Assembly (NCBI RefSeq): GCF_006345805.1
Contig: NW_021830093.1
Coordinates: 1-5,008, forward strand
DNA: 5,008 nt
Direction of reading: 5' to 3'
Source: Octopus sinensis
Lineage: Eukaryota
Shown here: positions 1-5,008 of the stretch, in pieces
Layout: each line of letters starts with the position of its first letter
How positions within the stretch are numbered: position 1 is the first letter of the stretch
The notes under the pieces: model-generated
The model's database searches: none
What the model saw: only the letters and a program-made list of their open reading frames with translations
What the model was told of the DNA's origin: nothing
Program-made: the position numbers and the translations under genes

Positions 1-149
1 AATAGTCAAAGACTAAATATGTATAAATATAACAATTAGGAATGGCCTAAACAGGCCATTCGTCCACCAGAAAAGCAGCCAGAACTCCAACCGCCAAGTA
101 GTGTAATTCGGAAATAAGGTGAAAATTTAAAAACATTTACCCTAATTCA

Positions 150-250
150 TCTTTTATACGATGCATCGTTTCAGTGTCTTTAATGATAGACCAGCTTAAT
201 TAAATTAAATTAAGCTAGTCTACCATAGGTCACACTTCATCAGTAAAAGA
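150..250 (-). ncRNA. Type I hammerhead ribozyme, identical copy on minus strand
   Basis: 150-250 is the exact reverse complement of 359-459; predicted cleavage between 157 and 156 on the minus strand. Confidence 0.9.
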
Positions 251-358
251 AACCTGGGAGAGACGGATATACACGAGGCGACTGTATCAATGCCTCGGGA
301 ATATCTGTCTTAAAATTTTCAAGACCAACGCATTCGCGCCAAACTTATCGGCAAATAT

Positions 359-459
359 TCTTTTACTGATGAAGTGTGACCTATGGTAGACTAGCTTAAT
401 TTAATTTAATTAAGCTGGTCTATCATTAAAGACACTGAAACGATGCATCGTATAAAAGA
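359..459 (+). ncRNA. Type I hammerhead ribozyme, complete catalytic core
   Basis: Stem I TCTTTTA(359-365)/TAAAAGA(453-459); core CTGATGA 366-372; stem II AGTGT(373-377)/ACACT(432-436) with extension 378-431; GAAA 437-440; stem III CGATGCATCG 441-450; GUA triplet 450-452, predicted cleavage after A452. Confidence 0.9.
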
Positions 460-579
460 TGAATTAGGGTAAATGTTTTTAAATTTTCACCTTATTTCCG
501 AATTACACTACTTGGTGGTTGGGAGTTCTGGCTGCTTTTTCTGGTGGACGAATGGCCTGTTTAGGCCATTCCTAAATTG

Positions 580-580
<1 letters not shown>

Positions 581-615
<35 letters not shown>
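581..615. repeat. (TA)n microsatellite
   Basis: Perfect TA run directly after the right arm of the inverted repeat. Confidence 0.97.
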
Positions 616-618
<3 letters not shown>

Positions 619-850
619 TATCTGTCTTTTATCGTTTATCTTCTATATGTTTCAGCAATTAGACTGCGGCCATGCTGGAGCACCGCCTTGAAGAACTTTT
701 AGTCGAATGTATCAACCCTAGTATTTATTTTTCTTTTAAGCCTGGTACTTTTTCTATCGGTTGTCTCTTGCCGAACTGCTATGTTACAGATACGCAAATA
801 TACCAACACCGGTTGTCAAGCGGTGGGGGTAGGGGCAAATACACACACAG
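619..850 (-). mobile_element. Octopus OR-type CORE-SINE, copy 1, 3' half
   Basis: Shares GACTGCGGCCATGCTGGAGCACCGCCTT...GGTTGTCAAGC with 1310-1500 and 1789-1965. Its 5' half lies at 1144-1299. Family name is from recalled resemblance to octopus OR1/OR2 SINEs; which one is uncertain. Confidence 0.8.
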
Positions 851-853
851 AGT

Positions 854-1143
854 GACGGTAGTGAGTTCCAATCCCGGACCGGGTTGCGTGTTGTGTTCTT
901 GAGCAAGACACTTTATTTCACATTGCTCCAGTTCACTCAGCTGTAGAAATGAGTTGTGACGTCACAGGTGCCAAGCTGTATCGGCCCCTTTGCATTTCCC
1001 TTAGATGACATCAGTGGCGTATAAAGGGGAGGATGGTATGCATGGGCCACTGCTGGTCTTCCATAAACAATCTCGCGCGGATTTGTGCCTCGGAGGGGAA
1101 CTTTCTAGGTGCAATCATGATCAGAAGGAGTCTTTATTCTTTA
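854..1143 (+). mobile_element. 5'-truncated tRNA-derived CORE-type SINE of a second family, nested in the central microsatellite of SINE copy 1
   Basis: B-box-like GAGTTCCAATCC (863-874), then TTCTTGAGCAAGACACTTTATTTCAC...CACTCAGCT, a segment also seen at 2610-2650 (+) and 2892-2925 (-). It splits the host SINE into two collinear halves. Confidence 0.75.
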
Positions 1144-1299
1144 TCTATATACAACGGGCTTCTTTTAGTTTCCGTCTACTAAATCCACTCACAAGGCTTT
1201 GGTCGGGCCGAGACTATAATAGAAGACACTTGCCAGATGTGTTACGCAGTGGGACTGAACCCCGAACAGCACTTCTTATCACACAGCCACGCCTGCGCC
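1144..1299 (-). mobile_element. Octopus OR-type CORE-SINE, copy 1, 5' half (tRNA-derived head)
   Basis: Minus strand begins GGCGCAGGCGTGGCTGTGTG; B box GGTTCAGTCCC (1261-1251); CORE-like GGCAAGTGTCTTCTA; aligns with 1593-1732. Confidence 0.85.
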
Positions 1300-1309
1300 T
1301 ATACTCTCT

Positions 1310-1530
1310 CTCTTTTACTCTTTTACTTGTTTCAGTCATTTGACTGCGGCCATGCTGGAGCACCGCCTTTAATCGAGCAACTCGACCCCGGGACTTATTC
1401 TTTTGTAAGCCCAGTACTTATTCTATCGGTCTCTTTTGCCGAACCGCTAAGTAACGGGGATATAAACATACCAGCATCGGTTGTCAAGCAATGCTAGGGG
1501 GACAAAAACAGACACACAAACATATACATA

Positions 1531-1571
<41 letters not shown>

Positions 1572-1732
1572 ATATATTATATATATATATATACGACGGG
1601 GCTTCTTTCAGTTTTGTCTACCAAATCCACTTAGAAGGCTTTGGTCGGCCCGAGGCTATAGTAGAAGACACTTGCCCAAGGTGCCACTGTGGTTGGTAAA
1701 CAAGCTACTTACCACACAGCCACTCCTGCGCC
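1310..1732 (-). mobile_element. Octopus OR-type CORE-SINE, copy 2, near full length with B-box region deleted and internal (TA)n
   Basis: Head GGCGCAGGAGTGGCTGTGTGGTAAG from 1732; CORE-like CCTTGGGCAAGTGTCTTCTAC; internal TA run ~1534-1592; tail AAGTAAAAGAGTAAAAG at ~1330-1312. The GGTTCAGTCCC segment present in copy 1 is missing near 1687. Confidence 0.88.
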
Positions 1733-1788
1733 TATATATAATACATATGTATATATGTGTGTATATATATACATACATACAAATATAT
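1733..1788. repeat. Mixed (TA)/(TG)/(CATA) microsatellite
   Basis: Low-complexity run between SINE copies 2 and 3. Confidence 0.9.
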
Positions 1789-1965
1789 CTTTTCTTTTAT
1801 CTTTTACTTGCTTCAGTTATTAGACGGCGGTCATGCTGAGGCACCGCCTTTTGGAATTTTAGTCAAACGAATCGACACCAGTGCTTTTGGCGAACCATTA
1901 GGTTACAGGAACGTAAACACTTCAACACCAGTTATCAAGCAGTGAAAGACAAACGCAGACCAAAT
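1789..1965 (-). mobile_element. Octopus OR-type CORE-SINE, copy 3, 3' half (diverged)
   Basis: CTTTTACTTGCTTCAGTTATTAGACGGCGGTCATGCTGAGGCACCGCCTT...GTTATCAAGC aligns with copies 1 and 2, with more substitutions and an internal deletion. Confidence 0.8.
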
Positions 1966-1972
1966 AACGCAC

Positions 1973-1976
<4 letters not shown>

Positions 1977-2009
<33 letters not shown>
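1977..2009. repeat. (TA)n microsatellite
   Basis: TA run flanking the left end of the second palindromic element. Confidence 0.95.
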
Positions 2010-2256
2010 GTACCGGAGTAAACACATAAATGTGAAACAAGGTGGAAAAAAGAGTACTCAAATACCAGTGGTAGAGTAATATGGTTTATTTAAAGCAGCA
2101 GAAAAATTCAACAAAACCTGTTACTCGGATTGCCGTTCATCGGACAGTTTTTGCTAGAATAGAACCGATATGTTGGTTCTATTCTAGCAAAAACTGTCCG
2201 ATGAACGGCAACTCAGAGTAACAGGTTTTGTTGAATTTTCTGCTGCTTTAAATAAA
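2010..2256. mobile_element. Snap-back palindromic element (arms 2085-2166 and 2175-2256; left arm extends unpaired to 2010) with decayed hammerhead motifs; probable inverted PLE terminus pair
   Basis: 82-bp arms, reverse complementary apart from one homopolymer indel and a small altered patch at 2127-2130; 8-nt apex. Each arm ends in AATAAA in the outward direction (2251-2256 +; 2090-2085 -). (TA)n on both sides. No sequence similarity to the 27-585 element. Confidence 0.7.
2190..2229 (+). ncRNA. Degenerate minimal type I hammerhead motif, probably inactive
   Basis: Stem I AAAACTGT(2190-2197)/ACAG-G-TTTT(2221-2229); variant core CCGATGA 2198-2204; ACG-GCAA; stem III CTC-A-GAG 2212-2218; GUA triplet 2218-2220. 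GAAA and the 3' strand of stem II are absent. The mirror copy at 2113-2151 (-) is more decayed. Confidence 0.55.
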
Positions 2257-2257
2257 G

Positions 2258-2292
2258 TATATATATATATATATATATTATATAATATATAT

Positions 2293-2357
<65 letters not shown>

Positions 2358-2392
2358 TGTGTTGTGTGTTGTGTGTGTGTGTGAGTATGTAT
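2258..2392. repeat. (TA)n followed by long (TG)n microsatellite
   Basis: TA run ~2258-2292, then TG run ~2295-2383, perfect for ~60 bp and then interrupted. Confidence 0.97.
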
Positions 2393-2530
2393 ATGAAGGG
2401 CTTCTTTCAGTTTTCGTCTACAAAATCCACTCAGATGGTTTTGGTCGGTCCGAGGCCATAGTAGAAGACACCCAAGTTACCATGCAGTAGAACTGAACCC
2501 GAAACCACGTAGTTGCAAAGCGAGCTTTTT
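2393..2530 (-). mobile_element. Octopus OR-type CORE-SINE, copy 3, 5' half (head eroded)
   Basis: GGGCTTCTTTCAGTTTTCGTCTACAAAATCCACTCA...GTAGAAGACAC...AACTGAACCCGAAACC aligns with 1155-1270 and 1597-1690; decayed B box GGTTCAGTTCT on the minus strand. Confidence 0.8.
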
Positions 2531-2546
2531 ATGAAAATTACATAAG

Positions 2547-2700
2547 GCACGTCGTCTAGTGAGCAGCAGTGTTGGGCCCATGATCGTATGGTCGTGGGTT
2601 CGATTCCTTGAACAAACACCTTTATTTCAGGTTGTTCCACCGCACTCAGCTCATAATGAGTATCAGATGCCGCTCGCCCCTCCACCTGTTCTTGCCTCCA
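2547..2700 (+). mobile_element. tRNA-derived SINE fragment, family related to 854-1143
   Basis: A-box-like GTCGTCTAGTG (~2550-2560), B box GGTTCGATTCC (~2597-2607), then TTGAACAAACACCTTTATTTCAGGTTGTTCCACCGCACTCAGCT similar to 900-942. 3' boundary approximate. Confidence 0.65.
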
Positions 2701-2765
2701 TCTGTTGCAACCGCAATTTTCTTCTGAGTCACAATGAGTTATCCAAGATGGCGTTTGTACATAAA

Positions 2766-2803
2766 CAGGCGTGGCTGTGCGGTAAGAAGCTGTCTTCCCA
2801 ACT
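2766..2803 (+). mobile_element. Short OR-type SINE head fragment
   Basis: CAGGCGTGGCTGTGCGGTAAGAAGCT matches the minus-strand heads of SINE copies 1 and 2. Confidence 0.6.
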
Positions 2804-2891
2804 GCACTATGGTCACTCCCTTCCATTACCTGTCGACATCACCTGTACAAGTGCAGAAGTATGTCACACGTCAGGTGTGGAAATGATAAAA

Positions 2892-3000
2892 GAGCAACGT
2901 GAAATGAAGTGTTTTGCTCAAGAACAAATCACACCGCCTGGTGAGGGAATCGAAACCCTGATCTTGCGATCGTGAATGCAACACTTTACCTCGACCAAGC
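2892..3000 (-). mobile_element. tRNA-derived SINE 5' fragment, family related to 854-1143
   Basis: Minus strand: A-box-like TGGTCGAGGTAA, B box GGTTTCGATTCC (2957-2946), then TTGTTCTTGAGCAAAACACTTCATTTCACGTTGCTC, nearly identical to 894-929. Confidence 0.75.
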
Positions 3001-3020
3001 ATTTTCACATATACGTAACA

Positions 3021-3081
3021 CCTACCTACCTACCTACCATACCTTCCTACTTACATACATACGTACGTATATATATATATA
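3021..3081. repeat. Compound (CCTA)/(CATA)/(CGTA)/(TA) microsatellite
   Basis: Tetranucleotide units grade into a TA run at 3069-3081. Confidence 0.9.
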
Positions 3082-3600
3082 GGTAAACAGTAAAAATAAT
3101 TACAGACATGGACAAGAACATGAAACACCTCAGAGACGACACAAGAACCACAGGACGGGACATTCGAAGCCCTCAGCTATCAGTCAAGAACCAGATCATC
3201 TTAGCAATTTCGGCTGATTAATCTTGAGATTGCTCCGATATGGCCAGCCCGCCAAGGGAAATCTAAGCCAAGCGCATTAGATCCCTGGAAGAAAGCTTCG
3301 AATGTATACAACACGAGGACAGAAAACGAACGAAGTACACGAACAAAAATACAGAATACGTGACACAATAAGAATACAAAACACGTAGAAACAATAACGG
3401 TAAAAATAAAAATAAACAACAGAACAAAAACCAGGACGTAGGACAAGGGTCTTTCGACAGGACGAGTTGAGTATGGGGCGCTTGTGAAGTTGTGCCTAAT
3501 GGCCGCAGGGAGACGAACAAATACGTGTTGCTTCTGCGACTGCTGGAACGAAAAAAGAGCGCTCAACAGCGGCTAGCGGTCACGTGAGAACAAAAGACAG
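3082..3600 (-). mobile_element. Probable non-coding terminal region of a third retroelement family ending at (TA)n, with a structured hammerhead-like segment at 3173-3236
   Basis: Sharp junction with (TA)n at 3081/3082; strong strand asymmetry (A-rich plus strand 3300-3430); long imperfect hairpin 3191-3243; hammerhead-like motifs on the minus strand. Distal boundary and family identity uncertain. Confidence 0.4.
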
Positions 3601-3770
3601 GAGAAAGCGACAGATGAAAAGAGAGAGAAGGTGGACGAGGGAGGAGAAGAAAGAGCCAGATCGAGGGGCTGGAGGTGAGAGAGATAGAGAAACGTAGAAG
3701 GGGGGGGGACGGATGAGAGGGAAAGAAAGGAAGGGGAAAAGGGAGGAGAGAGAGAGAAAGAGACAGATTA
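3596..3770. repeat. GA-rich polypurine low-complexity tract
   Basis: Plus strand is almost entirely G/A, with (GA)n, GGAA units and a G9 run near 3699-3707. Confidence 0.85.
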
Positions 3771-3791
3771 AGAGTAGTATCAATGCTAGAG

Positions 3792-3819
3792 AAAAAAAAA
3801 ATATATATTATATATATAC

Positions 3820-3850
<31 letters not shown>

Positions 3851-3887
3851 ACATACATAATACAAACATGCATGTATACATACACAC
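3792..3887. repeat. Poly(A) plus degenerate (TA)n/(CATA)n microsatellite
   Basis: A10 run, interrupted TA repeats, then CATA/CA units. Confidence 0.9.
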
Positions 3888-4289
3888 TTGTAACAAACGA
3901 AACAATAAGACTGTTGAAGCGGCCAAGTTGCAGCTGAAAATGTCGGCTGTGTCATATTTCTGTGGCAGACGTTACACGTGATCTACAGATGACTCCAAGT
4001 TTTACCAACCTTTTGTATTCCTCTGTCGTGTGATGTTCTTGCTAAAACAATATACAATACCATACGAAGGAAGAAATACCTTAGAATAAATGTCAAACAT
4101 ACTTTTGGCAGCGGGTTCTTTGACACATTTAGAGTTAGAACTTTAATGGTGGGACATTCCCATCAAAATCAAACCGAGACACTGAATTTTTGATAAGCCA
4201 ACCAGGTAACTCCTATGTTAGTGTTTCTCAATCACTTTTCTTACCTATAGACTCCTTCAATTCCTATTTTACTCGGGTGGACCCTCATA

Positions 4290-4698
4290 GCCATTTGTGG
4301 TCCGAAAAAAATCATATATTTTTATAATCTTATAATAATTCTGACGGTGAATGCATAGTGAAAAGTATTTTTTAAAAATTGAACTAAGTTTTTTTTATAT
4401 CACTTATCACTTAACGCATGCGCATCCTAAACTTGCCATTCACTTAAAAGAAAGAAAACCAGCTTCCTGTTCGCCTGTCATATGCAATGATTATCAATAC
4501 ATCACTAGGGCAGACATTTGATAAAGTGGGGCTATTCTTGCTTGAACCTGTATTCGTCCACGGTCAGCTATTTGTTGCATTCTCAAAGACTCACAAATTA
4601 TCTGATGTAAGAGTTAAAGTTATCAACACTGAGAAATAAGGGGAAGTATAGGGAGAATCTACATGAAGAACATAGTCTGCAAAGGAGTACTGGATTGA
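4290..4698 (+). pseudogene. Decayed Helitron Rep/Hel fragment: C-terminus of the PIF1-like SF1 helicase
   Basis: Manual translation from 4460: QLPVRLSYAMIINTSLGQTFDKVGLFLLEPVFVHGQLFVAFSKTHKLSDVRVKV, matching the Helitron/PIF1 pattern QFPVRLAFAMTINKSQGQT..VG..L..PVF.HGQLYVA.SR (motifs V and VI). Preceded in frame by VFFISLIT*...NLPFT (cf. VFIPRI...LPF). Ends after a frameshift with YMKNIVCKGVLD* at 4660-4698 (cf. TKNIVYKEVL). In-frame stops at 4637 and 4649. Best-supported part is 4390-4698. Confidence 0.88.
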
Positions 4699-5008
4699 AA
4701 GGTGTACACAAATTGAAATCTGTATAGGGCTCTGACAACATCGCCTCGGCTTATTAGTTACGAACGATGTGGGTTTCAGAGTATGCCATGTTGCATTAAA
4801 TGTTTACCTCCGTCAAATTGTGACCTCTATATTTTACATATAAATAATTTTCTATACTATAACATTTTTGCTTTCCAGATATGAAATTGTGACCACACAA
4901 ATTTTAAAATGTAATCTTTCCTGTTTATGGGGAAAATGGAAGAATAAGAGTGAATACTTATTTTATGAGTGCTGTGTATTAAGTCTATAAAATTGTGCAT
5001 AAACTATA

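Follow-up and report, generated by a model that had tools for sequence, protein, structure and literature searches.

A type I hammerhead motif, with all core elements present and three helices of which helix I is open-ended, lies at positions 359-459 of the plus strand in the 5,008 nt of Octopus sinensis DNA analysed here (the window; contig NW_021830093.1, positions 1 to 5,008). The motif sits inside a near-perfect inverted repeat of ~585 bp (arms 14-251 and 358-598, spacer 252-357), a large structure that an earlier interpretation of the same DNA, below called the sequence-only reading, had overlooked. On balance we favour the view that the locus consists of two opposite, 5'-truncated copies of a hammerhead-bearing retroelement, either of the Penelope-like element (PLE) kind or a non-autonomous retrozyme- or SINE-like element mobilised by PLEs. 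Judged from its sequence, the motif would belong to a known kind of hammerhead, that of PLEs and retrozymes, with a long helix II and an A-U closing pair as its unusual traits, and it is a predicted ribozyme. A retroelement origin, a dependence on PLEs, cleavage and a role for this cleavage are what we infer from the features collected in Table 1.

Table 1. Features of the hammerhead motif and of the surrounding inverted repeat, with positions in the window.
Feature	Position	Strand	Description
Stem I	359-365 / 453-459	+	UCUUUUA / UAAAAGA; 7 Watson-Crick pairs, read directly
Core box 1 (C3-A9)	366-372	+	CUGAUGA; read directly
Stem II	373-377 / 432-436	+	AGUGU / ACACU; 5 bp, read directly
Stem II extension	378-431	+	54 nt: 5x5 internal loop, 19-bp helix, hexaloop; pair probabilities >0.97
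5x5 internal loop	378-382 / 427-431	+	Between stem II and the 19-bp helix
Extension helix	383-401 / 408-426	+	19 pairs, two of them G-U (G386-U423, U392-G417)
Extension hexaloop	402-407	+	Caps the 19-bp helix
Core box 2 (G12-A14)	437-439	+	GAA, then A15.1 at 440; read directly
Stem III	440-443 / 448-451	+	4 bp; loop UGCA (444-447) self-complementary; read directly
Predicted cleavage site	452/453	+	A452 = H17; GUA triplet; from position relative to core
Right arm	358-598	+	Repeat unit of ~240 nt; starts 1 nt before stem I and has a TA-rich 3' end
Left arm	14-251	-	Same unit as 358-598 in opposite orientation; 3' end leftward into a short degenerate TA-rich stretch (14-30)
Left hammerhead copy	150-250	-	C3 243, G12 172, H17 157; descriptor match; 100% identical to right copy over the ribozyme
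Spacer	252-357	.	106 nt, unique; hairpin ~259-311 (z = -2.7)
Unit 3' hairpin	550-571	+	GAAUGGCCU GUUU AGGCCAUUC; mirror at 40-61
Microsatellite	581-615	.	Perfect (TA)17.5 (TRF); abuts 3' end of right copy
13-nt direct repeat, copy 1	299-311	+	GAATATCTGTCTT; blastn-short E = 0.007; within the spacer
13-nt direct repeat, copy 2	616-628	+	GAATATCTGTCTT; directly after the (TA)n

The order of the whole motif is UCUUUUA-CUGAUGA-AGUGU-(54 nt)-ACACU-GAA-ACGAUGCAUCGU-A/UAAAAGA. The core elements, with their order, spacing and coordinates, agree base for base with the sequence-only reading, and the same holds for the perfect 12-nt palindrome ACGAUGCAUCGU at 440-451, which comprises stem III and loop 3, and for the 19-bp helix of the stem II extension. 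The invariant core is complete, with C3 U4 G5 A6 N7 G8 A9, G12 A13 A14, the A15.1-U16.1 pair (A440-U451) and an H17 that is not G, and it is likewise complete in the minus-strand copy (243-237, 172-170 and 157). The core-adjacent pairs are Watson-Crick in 16 of 16 cases, stems I, II and III having 7, 5 and 4 bp, and the spacing between the two core boxes is 64 nt. The closing pair of helix II (10.1-11.1) is A373-U436 and not the conserved G-C, the second pair being G374-C435. No recognisable loop-loop or pseudoknot contact between helices I and II was found in the sequence, where the 5x5 internal loop is the sole candidate. At 5 bp from the core, and in the modelled fold about as far out as the 7-bp stem I reaches, this loop could substitute for the tertiary contact.

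The descriptor search proposed in the sequence-only reading was done with a descriptor of our own, which had CTGANGA, GAAA and UH as fixed elements, minimum lengths of 5, 4 and 3 bp for stems I, II and III, no more than 90 nt from box to box and G-U pairs allowed. It recovered the motif at 359-459 and its mirror copy on the minus strand, and these were the only two matches in the window. A single match (stems of at least 5/4/3 bp) was obtained in 4000 dinucleotide-preserving shuffles (40 Mb scanned), and 24 of 508,032 CTGATGA boxes planted in Markov sequence passed the descriptor, none of which reached stems of 7/5/4 bp. At 1.84 core boxes per window, the expected number of chance matches is ~1e-4 per window at the loose setting and <1e-5 at the observed stringency. 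Pairing by Watson-Crick pairs only and the self-complementary loop 3 are both outside the requirements of the descriptor. The loose descriptor matches random sequence about once per 20-60 Mb, and many chance matches are expected per gigabase genome; at the observed stringency, with Watson-Crick pairing throughout (16 of 16) and loop 3 palindromic, a chance origin is negligible even genome-wide. A chance match, or an assembly artefact in the form of a foldback chimera, would agree with the rate of loose matches in random sequence and with the trouble that inverted structures of the PLE type are known to cause in assemblies (PMC8557442), but the stringency reached by none of the planted cores, the strict pairing and the palindromic loop 3 argue against the former, and the arms, which enclose a unique 106-nt spacer and are set apart by 1 substitution and 3 indels, are unlike a perfect foldback artefact. 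We regard this explanation as extremely improbable.

No match to the Rfam hammerhead models (Hammerhead_1, _3, _II, HH9 and HH10) was obtained with cmscan, either for the whole window at E<=1 or for 100-520 at E<=10, and the matches at the stem II extension were weak, generic hairpin or miRNA-like ones only. The covariance-model check envisaged in the sequence-only reading was thus negative, which is weak evidence, as the filters probably fail on two short boxes that are separated by an insertion of 54 nt. Upstream of the ribozyme, a search for a tRNA-, 5S- or 7SL-type head or Pol III boxes, as in Schistosoma Sm-alpha, found no tRNA and gave no Rfam match.

The isolated 101-nt RNA has an MFE of -36.8 kcal/mol (z = -8.0). 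The MFE structure retains stem I and stem II with its extension, but pairs the UGAUG of the core with the CAUCG of stem III (p about 0.8). The hammerhead-compatible fold, at -35.8 kcal/mol, is 1 kcal/mol above the MFE, and stem III is formed with a probability of about 0.15 in the predicted ensemble. In longer transcripts, the upstream spacer sequence UUAUCGG (344-350) is predicted to pair with CUGAUGA (366-372) and would then compete with the active fold; the sequence upstream of the left copy differs from that at 344-350.

These competing structures bear on whether the element is real and its ribozyme dead or non-cleaving, a decayed hammerhead-like fold with boxes that serve reverse-transcriptase (RT) or protein binding, RNA dimerisation, or no role. 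The sequestration of the core by stem III and by 344-350 in a longer context is in line with this explanation, and so are the lack of an Rfam match, the very low activity of metazoan PLE hammerheads, which cleave poorly in vitro even as dimers (PMC4209133), and the result that hammerhead mutants left PLE insertion in vitro unaffected, with 0 reads ending at the cut site (PMC11167929). The A10.1-U11.1 pair in place of G-C points the same way, as Perreault et al. found 10.1-11.1 to be the most conserved pair after 15.1-16.1 (PMC3088659) and G10.1-C11.1 is a hallmark of PLE hammerheads (PMC4209133). Natural active hammerheads tolerate U-U at this position, however (PMC3088659), and cricket satellites have compensatory changes there (PMC2837043). 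All invariant core nucleotides, the A15.1-U16.1 pair and a permitted GUA triplet are present, and only 1 kcal/mol separates the hammerhead-compatible fold from the MFE. A dead ribozyme is accordingly given some weight here, but is considered unlikely.

When two copies were cofolded, a double hammerhead was predicted in which a stem III of 12 bp joins the two molecules. The energy of this dimer is -88.3 kcal/mol, compared with -73.6 kcal/mol (2 x -36.8) for the monomers, and on these predicted thermodynamics the motif would be dimer-capable, as the sequence-only reading had proposed. With its 4-bp stem III the motif should, according to the model, depend less on dimerisation than the newt or minimal PLE hammerheads. 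Because the copies are inverted, one transcript of the locus can never carry two sense ribozymes. The read-through RNA of both arms is predicted to form a perfect duplex of ~240 bp (-428 kcal/mol) instead of the ribozyme. Such a duplex is what would be expected if the host used the inverted repeat as a source of hairpin RNA, with the transcript serving as an endo-siRNA or ADAR substrate to silence the parent family and the ribozymes being incidental or defining transcript ends, but inverted TE insertions produce hairpins of this kind automatically and we find this function highly improbable.

The antisense strand of the motif folds 9.5 kcal/mol less well than the sense strand, a difference that rests on the two G-U pairs of the extension helix. 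The sequence-only reading had taken the orientation of these pairs, G-U in the ribozyme strand and A-C in the antisense, as a sign of selection at the RNA level. This argument could not be upheld: there are two such pairs only, and the orientation has p about 0.25 given two transitions and about 0.1 with all substitution types. The family members compared are the two copies of this locus, which are identical over the ribozyme and make no covariation signal available.

In the repeat search, the arms of the inverted repeat were detected as 87-251/358-522 (99%) and 36-74/537-575 (100%). In a gapped alignment of the reverse-complemented left arm with the right arm, a single substitution and three indels of one base each were seen, none of them before 516. 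The arms are 98-99% identical, and all differences are outside the ribozyme. The arms, with a GC content of 0.35, are arranged head-to-head, their 5' ends facing the spacer and their 3' ends directed outward into TA-rich DNA or (TA)n. A distance of 123 bp separates the core boxes of the two copies and one of 295 bp their cut sites, and in each copy the cut site is about 146 nt from the 3' end of the arm. The 3' part of the spacer, 312-357, probably belongs to the right copy. On both arms, the inner repeat boundary (251/358) is found one nucleotide outside stem I, which may be a coincidence, a stop or template switch of a reverse transcriptase at the structured ribozyme, or a module boundary.

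The (TA)17.5 microsatellite next to the right copy is either the insertion target or the element's own tail. Together with the preceding sequence it is enclosed by the 13-nt direct repeats, which bracket 312-615. An imperfect inverted copy of GAATATCTGTCTT is found at 259-271 and forms the spacer hairpin 259-311. The 13-nt repeat is a candidate target-site duplication (TSD) of a retroposed, (TA)n-tailed copy of ~304 bp; another reading is a tandem of 1.04 units with period 317. On the TSD reading, the left arm would have been inserted separately, 47 bp away and in the opposite orientation, and the locus would have arisen in two events rather than in one complex insertion. This would require re-insertion of the same family beside an existing copy, a habit that PLEs are reported to have (PMC6765202).

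The layout can also be read as one unit. In this alternative the whole of 14-598 is a foldback or MITE-type DNA transposon with TIRs of ~240 bp, a core of 106 bp and insertion at a TA site, and the hammerhead is a fossil captured in the TIRs, for example from an ancestral head-to-head retroelement pair, with no role in movement. A long near-perfect inverted repeat with a short unique core fits this structure, and the ending of both arms in TA-rich DNA is also expected of a TA-targeting DNA transposon. A second, unrelated near-perfect palindrome beside (TA)n at 2086-2255 suggests in addition that hairpin-shaped elements may be common in the genome. No direct repeat flanking the whole unit was found, however, where the left flank within the window is 13 nt and both ends are TA-rich, and recognisable transposase-type termini are absent. 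The sole significant direct repeat brackets the right copy alone, and when read as TSD-like it speaks against one DNA transposon that would extend over both arms. The hammerheads known so far are associated with retroelements and RNA replicons rather than with DNA transposons (PMC6155905, PMC6765202). We consider a transposon of this type decidedly unlikely and prefer two opposite insertions of a hammerhead-bearing retroelement.

Several known properties of PLEs resemble the features of the locus. Heavy 5' truncation is typical of PLE insertions, and at their 5' end there is 'often' an adjacent inverted copy, itself 5'-truncated, which gives rise to inverted repeats; the Naiad and Neptune PLEs prefer (TA)n targets (PMC8557442). 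The hammerhead of PLEs is located near the 3' end of the terminal repeat according to PMC11167929 and the legend of Fig. 1 in PMC8557442. Cleavage and extension of both DNA strands have been shown for a purified PLE protein, with reverse transcription beginning ~90 nt downstream of the hammerhead cut site (PMC11167929); the outward 3' ends of the arms, ~146 nt from the cut site, are compatible with this start. PLEs tend to insert beside existing copies (PMC6765202), and recently active Penelope families have been reported in octopod genomes (PMC13282606). No ORF with a PLE reverse transcriptase or a GIY-YIG endonuclease was found in the 5-kb window, as expected when the copies are short fragments like those left by truncated insertions. 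The link of the locus to PLEs is putative.

Hammerheads in the pseudo-LTRs of Penelope-like elements were reportedly described by Lunse, Weinberg and Breaker in 2017, and repeat-type hammerheads with a palindromic stem/loop III are said to go back to Forster et al. in 1988. A palindromic loop 3/stem III is a hallmark of metazoan repeat-type and PLE hammerheads, as stated in PMC4209133, PMC6765202 and the legend of Fig. S8 in PMC3088659. The classification of the motif as a type I hammerhead of the metazoan repeat or PLE kind, also made in the sequence-only reading, is supported by comparison with the PLE pseudo-LTR hammerheads of Cervera & de la Pena 2014 (PMC4209133), which are type I, have a palindromic stem III/loop 3 (15.2-16.2 / loop 3) and can form double hammerheads. 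As in the motif described here, helix II of PLE hammerheads exceeds the canonical 4 bp and there are no obvious contacts between loops 1 and 2 (PMC4209133). PLE hammerheads are found mostly in dispersed truncated copies, with 'dual' motifs on opposite strands 100-700 bp apart in Schistosoma (PMC4209133); the units here would likewise be dispersed, truncated copies, and they are paired on opposite strands, with the motif near the 3' end.

The motif differs from PLE hammerheads in both stem III and helix II. The minimal helix III of PLE hammerheads is absent or of 1-2 bp, whereas there are 4 bp and a tetraloop here, and their helix II, called 'larger than usual', has 6-8 bp (PMC4209133), compared with 5 bp, a 5x5 loop and 19 bp here. 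Of the background given for PLE hammerheads in the sequence-only reading, the minimal stem III thus stands, but not the 'very short stem II'. In the PLE consensus, one unpaired nucleotide after A9 is followed by G10.1-C11.1; in the motif an extra A pairs with an extra U, which results in the A-U closing pair.

The metazoan non-LTR retrozymes, described by Cervera & de la Pena 2020 (PMC7229834) as units of ~300 bp with a GC content <45%, have a type I hammerhead in a low-GC non-coding unit of ~300 nt, similar to the 240-350 nt and 35% GC found here. The invertebrate retrozymes have a more stable helix III, and those of mussels are without the canonical tertiary-contact nucleotides (PMC7229834); the former is as here, and the latter is in line with the motif having no recognisable contact. 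Retrozymes are, however, defined by direct tandems of a unit of ~170-400 nt and by circular RNAs, whereas the copies at this locus are inverted. A 2026 preprint (Li et al.; 10.64898/2026.07.22.740005) derives the metazoan non-LTR retrozymes from PLE pLTRs.

Stem III and loop III are fully self-complementary in newt satellite 2, ASBVd and the Aedes aegypti repeats (PMC4209133; PMC3088659, Fig. S8), which enables two copies to share one long stem III, of 10 bp in Aedes and 12 bp here. In these hammerheads a short stem II hairpin contacts stem I, unlike the stem II loop of the present motif, which is ~24 bp from the core. Among PLEs, the 'HHR_half_core' of Naiad (Craig et al. 2021, PMC8557442) also has CUGANGA and GAAA boxes that are far apart, 35-50 nt compared with 64 nt here, but it fits no hammerhead stem descriptor, while the motif fits all three stems. 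The tandem or inverted complexes of Naiad PLEs (PMC8557442) resemble the inverted locus, and their (TA)n targeting may have a counterpart in its (TA)n.

The insertion of PLE-type or PLE-mobilised copies would proceed as follows. Each copy would represent the 3'-terminal ~240-300 nt of the element, and the 5' ends of the two would face each other while the 3' ends run out into (TA)n or TA-rich DNA. This orientation is what we infer to result when a DNA break is primed from both of its sides. The ribozyme would cut the element RNA after GUA (452/453) during the life cycle, most efficiently as a double hammerhead, in which the palindromic stem III of one sense copy pairs with that of another over 12 bp, and the cut would release or trim unit-length RNA from longer transcripts. 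The internally looped stem II of 24 bp may be a peripheral elaboration of the element family. At the present locus, the ribozymes would most likely be passengers of the insertion events and not serve a host function.

For the long stem II, a more far-reaching proposal is that it is a selected module of an undescribed type I subclass belonging to an invertebrate retroelement family. The internal loop would dock on stem I in place of the usual loop 2 and allow efficient cleavage of the monomer, the 19-bp hairpin would have a second role as a reverse-transcriptase or Dicer/ADAR handle or as a conformational switch, and the edge at 358/359 would be a template-switch point that generates the head-to-head copies. 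This proposal is in our view very unlikely to hold.

The searches for relatives gave the following results. No tandem (direct) copy of the unit was detected in the window, where there is only the 13-nt repeat of period 317, and no ORF or protein family match was found in the repeat unit. Six-frame peptides of the two arms and the spacer, concatenated into one query, matched no protein at E<=10, exact look-ups of ORFs of the window gave no record, and a full-text literature search with sequence strings of the ribozyme and of a SINE-like repeat elsewhere in the window gave no paper. The structured pattern and the other exact patterns had no match in viral contigs or in bacterial and archaeal genomes. 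The sole match to CTGATGA N50-80 GAAACGATGCATCGTA, at 1328-1405 of a metagenome contig (L001), was rejected as due to chance, being located inside a piggyBac-like coding sequence and without a stem II.

The remainder of the window is rich in other repeats. The arms of the palindrome at 2086-2255 extend over ~2082-2166 and 2175-2259, with an 8-nt loop, and show 3 differences. On its right side the palindrome runs up against (TA)n at 2258-2292, and further (TA)n is found at 1977-2009. The palindrome was rejected as a relative of the hammerhead unit, as the hammerhead core is absent and there is no similarity, and it may be a MITE or foldback element or another head-to-head pair. Three diverged copies (72-81%) of a long SINE-like repeat are located at ~627-1300, 1307-1740 and 1788-2520, with TA, CA and GT microsatellites between them; we presume that this repeat resembles an abundant octopod repeat and that the microsatellite load of the window is likewise like that of octopod genomes. 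A further repeat family has direct and inverted copies at 866-928/2892-2954 (63 nt, 79%) and 898-942/2607-2651 (45 nt, 76%), which overlap long non-homologous ORFs at 2431-2975. Other simple repeats are (GT)46 at 2294-2383, (ACCT)11 at 3020-3066 and, at 3590-3780, (AT)n and (ACAT)n microsatellites that come after a low-complexity stretch rich in purines (AG/GA). The end of an ORF at 4475-4639 (+) resembles the C-terminus of a PIF1/Helitron-type helicase: a concatenated query of the SINE-like and helicase-like ORFs had one plant PIF1-like protein as its sole match (71% over ~38 aa, E = 2e-5), and no Pfam match was obtained for this ORF end. By this similarity, the ORF end is probably what remains of a decayed Helitron.

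By itself a single locus changes little, and the present one is a compact example of inverted, (TA)n-associated insertions of the kind described for PLEs. If the family is confirmed genome-wide, it would add to the hammerheads of the PLE or retrozyme type a member with a very large helix II and an A-U closing pair. It would help to widen search descriptors, as a motif of this kind would escape both Rfam and descriptors limited to the spacers of 7-17 nt given in the literature, and it would help to gauge how much peripheral variation the ribozyme tolerates.
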